This document shows, piece after piece, positions 46,152 to 63,160 of a stretch of 64,000 nucleotides of DNA. The number at the start of each line of letters is the position of its first letter. Position 1 is the stretch's first letter. This DNA comes from Paraphysomonas bandaiensis (taxonomy: Eukaryota; Protista; Chrysophyceae): assembly GCA_965644295.1 (NCBI GenBank), contig CBFFRP010000234.1:62001-126000 (forward strand), written 5' to 3'. The position numbers and the translations under genes are program-made. The notes beneath the pieces were generated by a model, which made no database searches, was not told where the DNA came from, and saw nothing but the letters and a program-made list of their open reading frames with translations.

Positions 46152-47652
46152 TCAATCTTCACCACCACCAGTTCCAGGAAGGACACCAGGTAGTCGCAAA
46201 AACTCCTACAACGAAGGAAAGTAAATATCATATCAAATTACTTTCTGTCTTTTAAATACCTCAAAAGATAGTGTCCCTGAACCATCTTCATCATATTTTC
46301 GCATCAACTTTTTCAATCGACGTTTCCTCATGAATGTTCCATTAAGCAGTAGCGCACGATTTAGCTCACTGAGAAAACGAATTATAGGATTCATACATAT
46401 ATTCGCAAATAGTACCGTATGTTAAGGGAGCCACTTTGATCCTTGTCAAAGTAATCGAATACTCTTCTTGCTTCCGCAACAGGATCAAACATTTGTTCAA
46501 CGTCACCACTTTCTACAGCTCCGGCTTCTTCAACTTCTTCCTCTTCTACCTCAATTTCAACATCTGTATCCTCGTCCTCTCCCCTGTATTCGTACATAAA
46601 ACAAAAAAACAGCTTATATTCATTCCACCTTTCAAACAAAGCAGTAGAATCATCCTCATCCTCTGGAGTGAAGTCTGTATCGGTCAAACCATAAATCGCG
46701 TATTGGCCAAGGAAATTAAACTCCTCATTGGCGGCGTAATCGTATGGAATATAGCAGTAACCACGGTCAGCCCAGCTGTCGCCCCAGCTGTTTCGGACTA
46801 TGAACCTGTAGCTCCACAATTAATACTTACACACGCTCTAACACGCGGAAAGATTGTATATTTTGAATATATATGCACCAGGAGTTACCTTTGCTCAGCA
46901 TCAGAATATCCTACGATAAGCATCGCATGCAAACCGTGCTCTGCTGACTGTGGATCAGATGGATCAGGGGTATCAATACGCCCACTGGGACCGGGATTAA
47001 AAAACTTTTTTGTAAGCTTTAGACCAAAGATTATTGGGAAGCCTTCAGCCAGACAAGCCTTCATGGCCTCGACGGTTGCGGGTATCTCTTTCGCCTCGGA
47101 TATCTTATACCGCATGGCCTGCTCTGTGCGTGCAGTGAGGTTTTGCTGTAAAATATAAGATGTATTACCAAATGCATCCGGTGGGGGGGGGGTGTTTATT
47201 TGGCTGAGGTCGAAAGGCCATGCATCGTCAAGACAAGCTCCTTTCATTGAGAGCGCATCGATCGCTCCCGTCAGTGTCATACCTTCATCACTGAGGGGGT
47301 CCGTATCTCGCCACAACTGTTTGTCTCGTAATCTACCAACATAGTAGACGAATAAACGCGATATATCTCCAGGAGTGTCGCCGCTCATGGCAGCTTCTCG
47401 CCAACAGAGGTATTCATAGGCCCCAACTGCAGCATTAGCACAGCAGGAATTGGACTGAGACTGATCCTCAACTGGACTGCAATACTTTCTGAGGTCTACT
47501 CGTGAGGGGGGTTCACGAGAGGGAGAGAACACACCAGTCTTTATGGGTGGAGGAGCTCTCTCGGGCTTCATTCCATGACTCGCTATGCGCTTACCATGCT
47601 TGTTTTTTATTATTCTCTTCACTCGCTTTCTAGCTCTTCTGAGATAGTCCAT
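46152..47652 (-). CDS. Papain-family (C1A, xylellain-like) cysteine protease with two C-terminal EF-hands
   Basis: VDLR, DQSQSNSCCANA (catalytic Cys), GLHAMLIVGY (His), RNSWG (Asn), an acidic linker, then DKDQSGSLNIRE and DEDGSGTLSFEE loops after splicing. Confidence 0.88.
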
Positions 47653-47790
47653 AGCAGCTCGATGATAAGTACTGCACACCAGTCTATGCAGCAAATAGTC
47701 TGTATGGAATTATGTACAGCTGCTTGTGACAGACCCAACTGCAAGTTTGCTTTGCAGCTGGATCTTTTTGTAGGATGCATGCGGTGTACG

Positions 47791-48030
47791 TATGTATGTA
47801 TGTATGTATGTATGTATGTATGTATGTATGTATGTATGTATGTATGTATGTATGTATGTATGTATGTATGTATGTATGTATGTATGTATGTATGTATGTA
47901 TGTATGTATGTATGTATGTATGTATGTATGTATGTATGTATGTATGTATGTATGTATGTATGTATGTATGTATGTATGTATGTATGTATGTATGTATGTA
48001 TGTATGTATGTATGTATGTATGTATGTATG
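47791..48030. repeat. (TATG)60 microsatellite
   Basis: 240 bp of perfect TATG units, degenerate out to ~48055. Confidence 0.98.
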
Positions 48031-48382
48031 TCTGTATGTATGTTTGTACGTATGTAGGTATCTGTGTACAGCAGTACAGCAGTACATATGCTGCTGCATG
48101 TACATCACATAACGGTAATAATACATCAGAGTACATAGAGATACAGCTGTAATGGCATGGTTTGATTTCAAGTTTAGCAGGCAGCAGTGCAGTGCACGTC
48201 TATCTGTTGAAATATTCATTCCTCCACAAGATGTTACTTTAACACCACTTCAAGTGTTATTGTAGCTGTCTGTAGGCACCTCACTGTACACTGTCAGAGT
48301 GATATATAGTTATCTGATTATAGTTATTTAATACTGTTGTTGTCCTCGTGAGACATCGTTCAGTTAATCATACTAGCAGTCA

Positions 48383-58044: not shown

Positions 58045-58618
58045 ATGTTTTCTGCATCTACTCAACTTCGCAGTGCTGCAAAGAGAGCATTCAATGGTAA
58101 GGATCAAGCTACTGTGATATGTGCTCATTGACTGACTTATTGTTCTCTAATGAAGTGAGCCAAAAGCGTTCGTGCTCATTTGTTAATGGTATGTGAGCTA
58201 TGAAGTATTTTATTATAGTGACCTCTGCCTGTAGCTGACAGCGGGCGGGCCGGTACGAAATGGTTCCACACGACGAACTTGTTATTAGTGGGAATGTTTC
58301 CTGTTGCTGTAGTGTCGAGTCCTTCCACTATGAGCTATGTGTTAGACCTACTTATGGGTGTTCTGATTCCGATTCATGCTCATGTTGGAGTTAACATTGT
58401 GATTAGTGACTACGTTCCAAAGGCAGCTAGAAGTGTGTTCATGTCCGCATATTGATGTTGTGGTTGACATTTTTGCAGGTGTCTGTAGGTATGGTATGGT
58501 GGGTGCTACTGTGATCACAATTGCCGGATTAACCAAGTTAAATGTTTTTGGGCCTGGAATGACGGAGACAATCAAGTACCTATGGAGGACCCCGAAGAAG
58601 CAGAAGACTAAAGCTTAG
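58045..58618 (+). CDS. SDHD: Succinate dehydrogenase membrane anchor subunit (CybS)
   Basis: Mitochondrial presequence MFSASTQLRSAAKRAF; DLLMG...HAHVGVNIVISDYVP...GPG.TETIKYLW; three introns. Confidence 0.9.
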
Positions 58619-59128: not shown

Positions 59129-60367
59129 TCAAATTTTACTGCAAAACATTGACCCCACCACCCCAGTATTTGGTGATACTTTTCCGTCTACCAGTAGCCT
59201 CCACTGATCTTTCACCCCCTCCGGGCCGTACACATGTTGCACCTTCATCCACTCTCTCGACCCCGCTACAAATACTCCAAGAGCCTCTTTCGACCTAGAA
59301 ATAAATTCTTTAAGTCCCCAACGCTCAACACAACTCGAGAACTCCGCAGGGGCGAAAAAGAGTGTTGGTGGCGGTCCTCGTACCACAGAGGCTTCAGTGG
59401 GATTGTCATGATGGCTCTTACCAATTGACATCGAATATTTAAGGTTTTCTCCAAGGACTTCGTGTAATTTGGAAACTATATCCCAGTTTCCTGACATGTC
59501 AATGATAACAGCGCCCACATTGCCACAGAGAGAGTGAACGTTATCATAAGGAATTACACGGTCAAAATAACCTGTGGATTTGACAAAATCTACATTATTG
59601 AGAGAAGTTATTCCAATTGTCTTAATTGGAAGAGAGCCAGGGCGTCGTTGAACAGATATTCGCTGGGCTATGCCGAGGGCTGTTTTACTTGATGCAGAGA
59701 TGATGTATACCTCTTCCGCACCAAGATACTCCCCATTCTTGTGGTGTCTGAAAAACTCATCTGCTAGAAAAGATGTCAAAAACAGACCTCTCAGAAGAGC
59801 TTGTCGATCTTCGCCATCTTCTGTGTCGTCCACGTTGAAGGGGTCCACATCGGTTCTGGAAAAGTCTACGTAAACTTGTGCATGCTTCGCTCGGTGCTCA
59901 CCAACGTCGAGGAATCCACCATCGGGCTTCGCTTTGCCTGTTATTGTCACATATTTGCTCATAGGATACCATCCAAAGTATTTCTCGCCAACTGTGACAT
60001 TGGGTACCAAGGACTCGATGACAGTGGCCCACCCCATCGCCGGTACACGTCCCCACTCTAGACTGCTTTCACTGGGGAAAAAGTCCCAATACCCTAGCTT
60101 ATCGCCCGCCCATGCATACGTGACAGTGTTAGCGGTCAAAGAGAACTTATCAACCTGAAGTCTAACTTCTCCTGTTTGTACTGGATTCAAAGTACTCTCC
60201 CTCACTATTCTCGTTTCTTTGATATCTCTTTTGTTTACCTATTGCTATAGTCATCTATCGATACATATAAACTGATGCTAGTAAATTACCTCTAAAGTTA
60301 CATTCGATACAGTTCGAAGCACTCCTGTGGGGCGTGTAAAGCACGTCATCCGGGAGCACCACATCAT
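59129..60367 (-). CDS. DUF2855 family protein (MDR-like fold)
   Basis: FSLTANTVTYA, YWDFFP, GRVPAMGWA, GLFLTSF, SASSKTA and LFFAP. A short first exon MMWCSRMT...TLE is followed by one intron. Confidence 0.85.
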
Positions 60368-60910: not shown

Positions 60911-61734
60911 ATGCTTTACTCAACTACCTTATTTCTTGCGTTGGCGAGTGCTGTTGCGCTTCAGGTAGAATAACATTTCGTCGATGTTCTGTGTCTCGAG
61001 GCTGATGTTGTATTGTATCAGGAGGCTCCACCTGTGACGGTCGAGCTCTACTATGAGAGTCAATGACCCGGGTGCCAGAGCTTCACCACAGGCTCATTGA
61101 AAAGAGTCTTGGATGAGCCTGACATGGTTGCTATTATTGACTTAAAATTGGTGAGTTAGTGGACACGTGAGGTCCTGTGAGTCGTAGCTAACCTTTCCAA
61201 CCAGGTGGCATATGGAAACACCCAACAGAACAGAGATGGATCTTTTACCTGCCAGCATGGCGCTGGAGAATGCGAGACTGATGCCATGGAGCTATGTACT
61301 CAGTACAAGCTTTCTGGCGATATAAGCTCTATTTCCAGCGGCGACACATCACTTGCAGCTTGGCCATTCATCCTATGCATGGAAGAGGCAGATGGGTCCC
61401 CAGCAATGGGTCAGTCGTGCTATGAGAAGAACATGAATGCGACTGCTCTGCCTTGGTCTACCATTAGTGCCTGTGTCGCTGACGAGTATGAAGCGGTGCA
61501 GACTGCCGCCATGAAAGCTACTCCGAACCACGAATGTGCGTGATTTGTTAATTGTTTATCCACATTTCTAACATGGATGTAGATGTTCCATGGGTTTTGG
61601 TTGATGGCGAACTCCTTGAAAACACTAATATGCTGGAGAAGGCCATCTGCGATGCGTACACTGGTGTTCCCCCCGCAAGTTGTGGTGTGAGGTCCAATGG
61701 TGCTCTTCCTGAGGTGGAGCCCTGCTTCGCGTAG
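60911..61734 (+). CDS. GILT (gamma-interferon-inducible lysosomal thiol reductase) family selenoprotein with UxxC active site
   Basis: Exons 60911-60964, 61022-61150, 61205-61535 and 61583-61734. Signal peptide; VELYYESQ-TGA(61064-61066)-PGC; CQHGAGEC signature; YVPW. Confidence 0.9.
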
Positions 61735-61842
61735 AATTCTACGCAACGCGATAATTAAGATATTATCGTAGTATTGCTAATGAGAGTATTTGATGCGAGC
61801 AAGAAGATGTCTTAGTGGTATGTTATGTGTTGTGTTTACGCT

Positions 61843-61888
61843 GGAGGCGGAATGACGGATATTATTTAGATATCCCGATATGCTATCC
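61843..61888 (+). promoter_or_regulatory. Candidate miniature SECIS element in the GILT 3' UTR
   Basis: AUGAC/CGAU quartet with tandem G.A pairs; 7-bp helix GGAUAUU/GAUAUCC; lower helix GGAGGCG/UGCU(A)UCC. Confidence 0.55.
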
Positions 61889-62360
61889 CCGTGCTCATGG
61901 CATATATTTTGTATTTCTGAGCTCAACTTGTGAGACAAATATTCTCGTAAAGTAACGCGAATAATATATCATGATTTATATTCACAATAATGATAAGAAA
62001 TCTTCATCACTATCTTTTCCTGGTAGTGTACGATGTACGATGCTATACCATAATACATACATATCATAAATTTTATTGGAGCTCTCTACTTCGTATATCG
62101 TGTATGGTGGGAGCCAATACGAAATATTACAATATATATTTAGAGCGCATCTTGTACTCATTTATTTATTCCTCCTGAAGGGAAATCTCTTAGCTTTTAG
62201 CTCCGGCTTTTAAATAGCTACAGTAGGAAGTGGCGGTTGTGCTAACCACAGAACTTTAAGGAAACTGCTCCCGATATTCTCAGAAAACTTAATATCACTA
62301 TGTGCTATCTAATGTTGGGTTATAGATTAGAGCTACATTGCTTTGTGATGGTTTACAAGC

Positions 62361-62412
62361 TATATTGGTACAGGTTTTTAACGCCTATTGCTAAATAAAA
62401 AGACTTTCAACA
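62361..62412 (+). mobile_element. Extremely 5'-truncated (52 bp) non-LTR insertion
   Basis: Perfect 13-bp TSD atggtttacaagc (62348-62360 and 62413-62425). The insert aacgcctattgctaaataa...gactttca matches the extreme 3' end of the 39806 element. Confidence 0.82.
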
Positions 62413-63160
62413 ATGGTTTACAAGCAGCGTCTGTTTATTTATAGTTTATAGTTATGAACTTATAGACGTTGCAAAATACTGTGAGGATAAACGCATTGTA
62501 TTGCAATATATATATATTGATGTAAAGGTCCTCGTCAATACATTCAAATATATTGTTCATGAACACTGCAATATACTGAATCTTAGCTACTATTTTTAAA
62601 AAAACTATGGCAGTGGTCTTAAAAGTAATAGTGTAACAGTATATATAATATATAGGAGTATAAAAACTGGCGAAAACAGTCCGTACCATAGCAGTATTTC
62701 TACGCAGTGCGCGGATAAAGACAGCATATTTACACTTTACCATCATATACTTATCGAATCCATTTGTCTAACTCATCAAGATAAACAGTCTTATATCGTT
62801 GCTACATTAGGAAGAAAAGTGGAATATTGGTGGGAAGGTACAGCTTTAGATTGTCAATGACTTTATTAAAGTATGTACAGTATATGTGGGAGTTCTGGTG
62901 AAAGATATGATGAACAGTACATACAGTACATGTACAAGTATATCTTCAAGATATCTGGATGGACAGTGCTGGATTTTCTGGGATTTTTGTTGCAAAATAT
63001 GTGCTATTTTGATATTGCTGACGGTGAAATTTCGAATTTTGTGTGCAATTTCTCCTACATTGTCCTTGACTACGCACATAAAAATCAACCAACAGGGTCA
63101 CTGGGTGATCCATTGAACCATTGCGACAATCATTTCCGTTCTATAGCACTTGCTTCAACG

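Follow-up and report, generated by a model that had tools for sequence, protein, structure and literature searches.

A shortened SECIS-like hairpin without an apical AA motif in the 3'UTR of a Sec-GILT gene from Paraphysomonas bandaiensis

The window analysed here, a 64-kb stretch of the Paraphysomonas bandaiensis genome, carries on its forward strand a Sec-GILT thiol-reductase gene (60911-61734) of four exons (60911-60964, 61022-61150, 61205-61535, and 61583-61734), whose spliced translation comprises 221 codons and ends with a TAG stop at 61732-34. The three introns of 57, 54, and 47 nt are all of the GT..AG type, the N-terminus of the product is signal-peptide-like, and exon 3 matches the Pfam GILT model with an E value of 1.3e-10. 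A single in-frame TGA occurs across the whole reading frame, at codon 33 (61064-61066), where the UGA occupies the position of the first Cys in the CxxC redox motif (YYESQ-U-PGC). Sec-GILT has already been listed as one of the less common selenoprotein families of algae (PMC7539508), and the selenoprotein itself is not new. The GILT gene is adjoined on the minus strand by an intronless DUF2855 gene (59129-60205), for which every one of the nearest atlas clusters is from bacteria (Pseudomonadota); judged by these matches, it may be a neighbour of bacterial origin in a eukaryotic genome. Elsewhere in the window, a long tandem array at 47600-48200, whose repeat period yields (YVCM)n or (HTYI)n in translation, according to the frame and strand read, is located upstream of a papain/EF-hand gene.

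Transcript contigs from four public runs, which include poly(A)-selected marine metatranscriptome material and cover cultures as well as field samples, skip the three predicted introns exactly, and the Sec-GILT mRNA is abundant and fully spliced in both types of sample. The Sec-GILT gene is thus real and expressed. The window transcript contigs stop at 61958, 61984, 61985, and 62006, while the same-species contigs L098-L102 encode a 99%-identical product, retain the UGA, and have a UTR identical to that of the window. This 99%-identical product is on record in MMETSP1103 (taxid 36769, Paraphysomonas, a heterotrophic chrysophyte). Close GILT homologs are also filed under Durinskia, a dinoflagellate, and Mesodinium; culture labels of this kind can reflect prey or contaminants. 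L098 enters a poly(A) tail after ...CUUCAUCA, at window position ~62007, so that the 3'UTR, as delimited by the transcript ends and this tail, covers 61735-62007 (273 nt, plus strand) and contains the hairpin described below, about 119 nt 5' of the poly(A) site. Mapping of this site had been proposed as a check by a first-pass annotation of the sequence, and it places the hairpin at 61843-61888 upstream of the transcript end. Downstream of the gene, a segment of ~50 nt (62360-62410) that is single-copy in the window matches many unrelated contigs with 2-6 differences; such matches were present in all four runs, with a summed depth of >13,000 in one of them, and both flanks diverge. No tRNA was found at 62360-62410; the segment could be a dispersed repeat, or it could be part of an abundant RNA that carries it as a conserved module.

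The window UGA aligns with a Cys codon in P0002, P0004, and L016 and has a UGA counterpart at the matching position in about 30 fetched orthologs; it therefore aligns with Cys or Sec in its homologs, and the hairpin is situated in the 3'UTR of the same mRNA. Downstream of the UGA, comparison of the window gene with five orthologs gave pN values of 0.17-0.22 and pS values of 0.75-0.82, synonymous sites being saturated at these distances. Two differences were detected between the assembly and the transcripts within Sec-GILT, and both are synonymous. These substitution rates indicate that the coding sequence 3' of the UGA is under purifying selection. Because low pN and saturated pS past the UGA mean that this region has evolved as coding sequence, recoding would be required, and translation past the Sec-GILT UGA is implied.

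Two further observations concern the coding region and its Cys-encoding relatives. L013 (Sec, TGA at 947) and L016 (Cys, TGT at 440) are near-identical GILT copies from shared environmental samples, and an identical SECIS lies downstream in both (L013:1864-1904 and L016:1389-1429), the Cys copy having kept it. This pair looks like a recent Sec/Cys switch, or like two paralogs or alleles of which one has a fossil SECIS, and the existence of a near-identical Cys copy indicates that the replacement of Sec by Cys is still going on in this group. In addition, exon 2 of the window gene includes a perfect 9-bp stem (CAGGCUCAU/AUGAGCCUG, 61089-61124, plus strand) about 25 nt past the Sec codon. Stems are found at similar positions in several orthologs, including the Cys copy, with z-scores from -0.2 to -3.8, and the exon 2 stem may be SRE-like or a mere consequence of conserved codons.

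The hairpin itself starts 108 nt after the TAG; the first-pass annotation, which had put this distance at about 110 nt, had read its letters and coordinates exactly, and RNAfold returned the structure that had been claimed. The 5' strand of helix 1, GGAGGCG (61843-61849), pairs with UGCUAUCC (61881-61888), which carries one bulged A. It is followed by an internal loop and the 5' core strand, GA-A-UGA-C (61850-61856, with GAA at 61850-52 and UGAC at 61853-56). The apical domain (61857-61875) comprises 19 nt, with a 7-bp helix 2 formed by GGAUAUU (61857-63) and GAUAUCC (61869-75), an AUUUA loop (61864-68), and no AA; sequence and folds agree here with what had first been noticed. The 3' core strand CGAU (61876-79) and one unpaired A (61880) complete the element, all of which is on the plus strand. 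MFE and centroid folds both consist of a lower helix of 7 bp with the bulged A, an internal loop, the 7-bp upper helix, and the AUUUA loop. Judged by sequence and predicted secondary structure alone, AUGAC thus faces CGAU with seven pairs below and seven above, and the sequence fits a K-turn in which a bulge of GAA or AAU is followed by G.A and A.G. The upper helix is rich in A and U and only weakly stable (-5.3 kcal/mol), and the local folding energy is unremarkable, with z-scores of -0.9 for a 61-nt piece and -1.7 for an 81-nt piece. For the whole 3'UTR, an MFE of -70.8 kcal/mol was calculated (z -2.6), and 3 of 200 shuffles were as stable. In this fold, helix 1 is extended into a long imperfect rod (61774-61954) that takes up most of the 3'UTR and is kept in the centroid, with the K-turn hairpin at its tip. 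The hairpin is invariant among the transcript runs, without within-species covariation.

To gauge how often such a structure arises, a descriptor was used that comprises (A/G)UGAN...NGAN with at least 6 contiguous pairs above the core, a loop of at most 9 nt, and at least 4 pairs below. Dinucleotide shuffles contained 0.6 matches to it per 128 kb, compared with 3 in the real window (both strands), and the chance of finding such a hairpin in a given 273-nt UTR is about 0.001-0.006. A descriptor match at 46293-46262 on the minus strand was rejected since it falls within an EF-hand coding exon, as was another at 58194-58220 on the plus strand, which lies between coding ORFs in what is apparently an intron. 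Strict scans from the stop to the poly(A) site, as well as relaxed ones that allowed core-strand spacings of up to 130 nt, GGGA-type cores, and any preceding base, revealed no second candidate with a closing helix. A core-like site at 61781-61844 was discarded as its helix fails to form, and another at 62858-62904 because it lies past the poly(A) site and outside the transcript. Searches with Rfam, both at gathering score and at E<=10, returned no SECIS in the window and no snoRNA or K-turn family match at the hairpin site. The Rfam models did not match any of 20 ortholog loci as SECIS either, even those with canonical AA bulges, so the negative result for the window carries no weight. The hairpin is the only SECIS-like element in the Sec-GILT 3'UTR, which bears out the earlier remark that no convincing canonical SECIS lies nearby.

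We also considered that a different recoding signal acts on the UGA and that the hairpin is accessory, either because a canonical SECIS lies outside the mapped transcript or because a stem-loop in the coding sequence does the work. The core-like site at 62858 and the 9-bp stem of exon 2, together with its counterparts in several orthologs, could be taken in this direction. Yet 62858 is absent from the mRNA, since the transcripts are polyadenylated and stop at ~62007; the Cys copy L016 likewise contains the coding-region stem, for which the z-scores are modest; and the relaxed UTR scans yielded no further candidate. To our knowledge, the redefinition elements described for eukaryotic Sec codons modulate a SECIS and never replace one, which is a general consideration against a substitute within the coding region. 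We regard a different signal as quite improbable.

The relationship of the hairpin to SECIS elements of other Sec-GILT mRNAs was then evaluated with orthologous elements located in Sec-GILT mRNAs and genes from many environmental and culture transcriptomes. In an unbiased k-mer test, GGAAUGAC (61849-56), which contains the 5' core strand, emerged as the 8-mer of the window UTR most common to ortholog UTRs, being present in 8 of 25 where about 0.16 would be expected by chance, and it has been kept although synonymous sites are saturated between the GILT genes. The (C/U)GAU-AU sequence is moreover common to the window, L008, L022, L013, L024, and L027. A covariance model was built from four longer orthologous SECIS (L109, L110, L022, and L008), with the window left out. 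Across both strands of the 64 kb, it gave one match, at 61841-61889 with 19.2 bits; the corresponding E value of about 0.025 is only moderate and its calibration rough. Applied to 69 sources, the same model recovered the predicted SECIS of L001/L002, L027, L034, L024, and L013/L016, and produced just two weak matches off predicted sites, both with E>1. MAFFT was unable to align SECIS of very different apical length, and the comparison was thus based on a four-sequence subset that aligned correctly, on anchored tables, and on a model-based alignment. Both helices covary, as 91% of the cells pair, compared with 18-46% (mostly about 40%) when the partners are slid, and 11 of 11 helix pairs have changed on both sides across orthologs in an alignment that was fitted to the model. 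Taken together, the covariance-model match, the shared core 8-mer, and the covarying helices argue for orthology between the hairpin and the SECIS elements in other Sec-GILT mRNAs. Absence from orthologous UTRs had been named in advance as an outcome that would speak against the element; instead, core and covariance model are shared with the orthologs.

These data also bear on the possibility that the hairpin arose by chance and takes no part in recoding. Its ordinary local folding energy (z -0.9) and the two similar hairpins at other positions of the window, one within a coding exon and one within an intron, are what such a structure might show, but an expected number of about 0.001-0.006 in a 273-nt UTR, the sole covariance-model match in the 64-kb window, and a core strand conserved in orthologous UTRs despite synonymous saturation are not, and we consider mere coincidence highly improbable.

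While the core is shared, the apical domain differs widely within the family. Counted as the nucleotides that separate AUGAN from NGAN, the distance amounts to 15 nt in L026, 19 nt in the window hairpin, and 20 nt in L001-L004, followed by 30 nt in L109, 33 nt in L106, 35 nt in L013/L016 and L034, 36 nt in L110, 37 nt in L022, 39 nt in L107, and 40 nt in L008. Longer apices are found in L070, L071, and L076 (42 nt), L029 and L091 (44 nt), L031 (46 nt), L005 (49 nt), L084 (52 nt), L019 and L027 (57 nt), L023 (59 nt), and L024 (62 nt), and in L018 a stable rod of 125 nt separates the core strands. Apical lengths therefore grade continuously between 15 and 62 nt, with a single case of 125 nt, and most orthologs fall between 30 and 62. 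In the 3'UTR of L018 (798-930), the core GGAAUGAC ... CGAC encloses this GC-rich rod (-73.9 kcal/mol), and it is the opposite extreme to the 19 nt of the window. At the other end, a Sec-GILT transcript of 69% identity, L021 (780-810), has GGAAUGAC and CGAA separated by 19 nt that form 4 bp at best with a bulge; its SECIS may be smaller still, or it may be broken. No clean upper helix could be drawn for L021 and L104/L105, each of which has the conserved 5' core strand or a similar one.

The AA motif is distributed just as unevenly. An unpaired AA after 8-11 pairs, much as in the textbook form, occurs in L071, L076, L091, L084, and L023, which belong to a distant GC-rich clade, and its recovery there demonstrates that the procedure detects canonical features where they are present. 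Within the clade around the window gene, no AA was seen in the 5' side or loop of the window element, L034, L008, L029, L031, L005, L027, L024, L018, L107, and L109. The short forms of L001 and L026 carry an AA, but merely 5-8 pairs above the core. In the nearest relative of the window gene, the L013 group, the apex measures 35 nt and its loop contains an AA. In an approximate tree (FastTree on a query-anchored alignment, branch supports not considered), the window adjoins L013/L016, L001 is close, and L026 adjoins L034. The short-apex L001-L004 and L026 represent independent lineages whose helix sequences differ and whose genes are intact. Apical shortening therefore seems to have been recurrent, two or three independent times, rather than inherited once, and the comparison indicates that the window SECIS descended from one of ordinary size and lost most of its apical domain. 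The first-pass annotation had proposed a shortened SECIS for the whole lineage; orthology and position in the UTR sustain this for the Sec-GILT hairpin, whereas, given the 35-nt apex with AA in the nearest relative, its lineage-wide form is supported in part only.

Compared with known elements, the window hairpin resembles type I SECIS in its position in the 3'UTR of a UGA-containing mRNA, the lower helix, the internal loop, the unpaired A before UGA, the UGAN/NGAN quartet able to form tandem G.A pairs, and the loop-closed upper helix. It departs from them (SECISearch/SECISearch3 and Rfam SECIS_1) in helix 2, where 7 bp and 19 nt between the core strands stand against 12-14 bp in the type I helix (PMC13059024). 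The SECISearch pattern places an unpaired AA/CC 10-13 nt past the quartet, and GA another 15-39 nt beyond (PMC2375036); in the window, the loop is AUUUA, no unpaired AA(R)/CC occurs 10-13 nt after the quartet, and NUGA is separated from GA by 21 nt where at least 27 are needed (PMC2375036). Since SECISearch3 filters out candidates in which helix 2 or the apical loop falls below a length limit (PMC3753652), and the AA is missing as well, standard predictors would miss the window hairpin. Type II SECIS from Ostreococcus, Chlamydomonas, and Dictyostelium (PMC2375036) likewise depart from type I in the apical part in a lineage-specific manner while keeping the core. They lengthen the apex and keep an unpaired AA(A), whereas the window apex is shortened and its AA lost; the long Sec-GILT forms L018, with its 125-nt rod, L005, and L024 resemble the long mini-stem of type II. 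The GGGA-type SECIS of Toxoplasma and Neospora are also protist-specific, non-canonical, and overlooked by standard patterns, as the window element would be. In these parasites, GGGA replaces AUGA within a normal architecture, while the window combines a canonical core with a shortened architecture. The 3-nt bulge, the tandem G.A, and the two flanking helices are further shared with the kink-turns bound by L7Ae-family proteins (box C/D snoRNA, U4 snRNA, and rRNA; PMC2792357). The overall size of the window element is in fact nearer to these generic kink-turn RNAs than to SECIS, but unlike the window hairpin, they are not found in 3'UTRs of UGA-containing mRNAs and play no part in recoding. In the literature searched, of which coverage was incomplete, no shortened or AA-less protist SECIS is described, and there is nothing on selenoproteins of Paraphysomonas.

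With a short helix 2 and a missing AAR motif, the element should work poorly by the known rules: in mammals, mutations of the AAR motif block Sec incorporation, although no factor was known to bind it (PMC2792357). It might hence be argued that the hairpin is the decayed remnant of a SECIS, that its apex has been lost, and that codon 33 mostly terminates translation, with pseudogenisation or a Sec-to-Cys switch under way. Helix length and AA, which are essential in animals (PMC2792357), are indeed both missing, a Cys copy with a retained SECIS (L016) exists in the sister lineage, and the 19-nt apex of L021 barely pairs. However, a decaying gene is hard to reconcile with the abundance and complete splicing of the mRNA in both cultured and field material, with an intact frame past the UGA in which both polymorphisms are synonymous, with the recurrence of short apices in L001-L004 and L026 alongside intact genes, and with a core strand that is the best conserved element of the UTR. 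We thus deem decay unlikely.

We favour the interpretation that the hairpin at the tip of the 3'UTR stem is the working SECIS of Sec-GILT, to which we assign a probability of roughly 0.75; that it binds the Sec machinery and that the UGA is decoded as Sec are inferences. The core A-UGA-C opposite C-GA-U would fold into a kink-turn with tandem G.A/A.G pairs. In known eukaryotes, the SECIS core is the binding site of SBP2. By analogy, the core of the window element is predicted to recruit the SBP2-type protein of the organism and, together with it, eEFSec and Sec-tRNA(Sec) to the ribosome, whereupon the UGA at 61064 would be decoded as selenocysteine in place of a stop. An eight-fold range of apex size within one gene family, combined with frequent loss of the AA, suggests that the apical domain contributes little in these organisms. 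Two views of this can be taken. The better-supported one is that constraint on apex length and AA may be relaxed in this stramenopile group, with the window gene at the short extreme. A bolder proposal holds that in this lineage and its relatives, Sec insertion might need only the K-turn core and a few base pairs, helix-2 length and AAR being dispensable; we treat it as tentative and lean slightly against it.

Textbook SECIS models, which are mainly based on animals, require in every eukaryotic SECIS an AAR motif at a set distance from the core, and prediction tools filter on both. The Sec-GILT family has kept the core, while its apex ranges from 15 to 125 nt and the AA has often been dropped. 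It thereby provides a series of naturally occurring length and motif variants with which the function of the apical domain can be probed, and suggests that searches insisting on a canonical SECIS predict too few selenoproteins in chrysophytes, diatoms, and related plankton. If the K-turn core and a few base pairs do suffice, this would be a mode of recoding that current predictors are designed to discard, the SECIS complex would make a different contact with the ribosome or eEFSec, and selenoproteomes would be under-counted.
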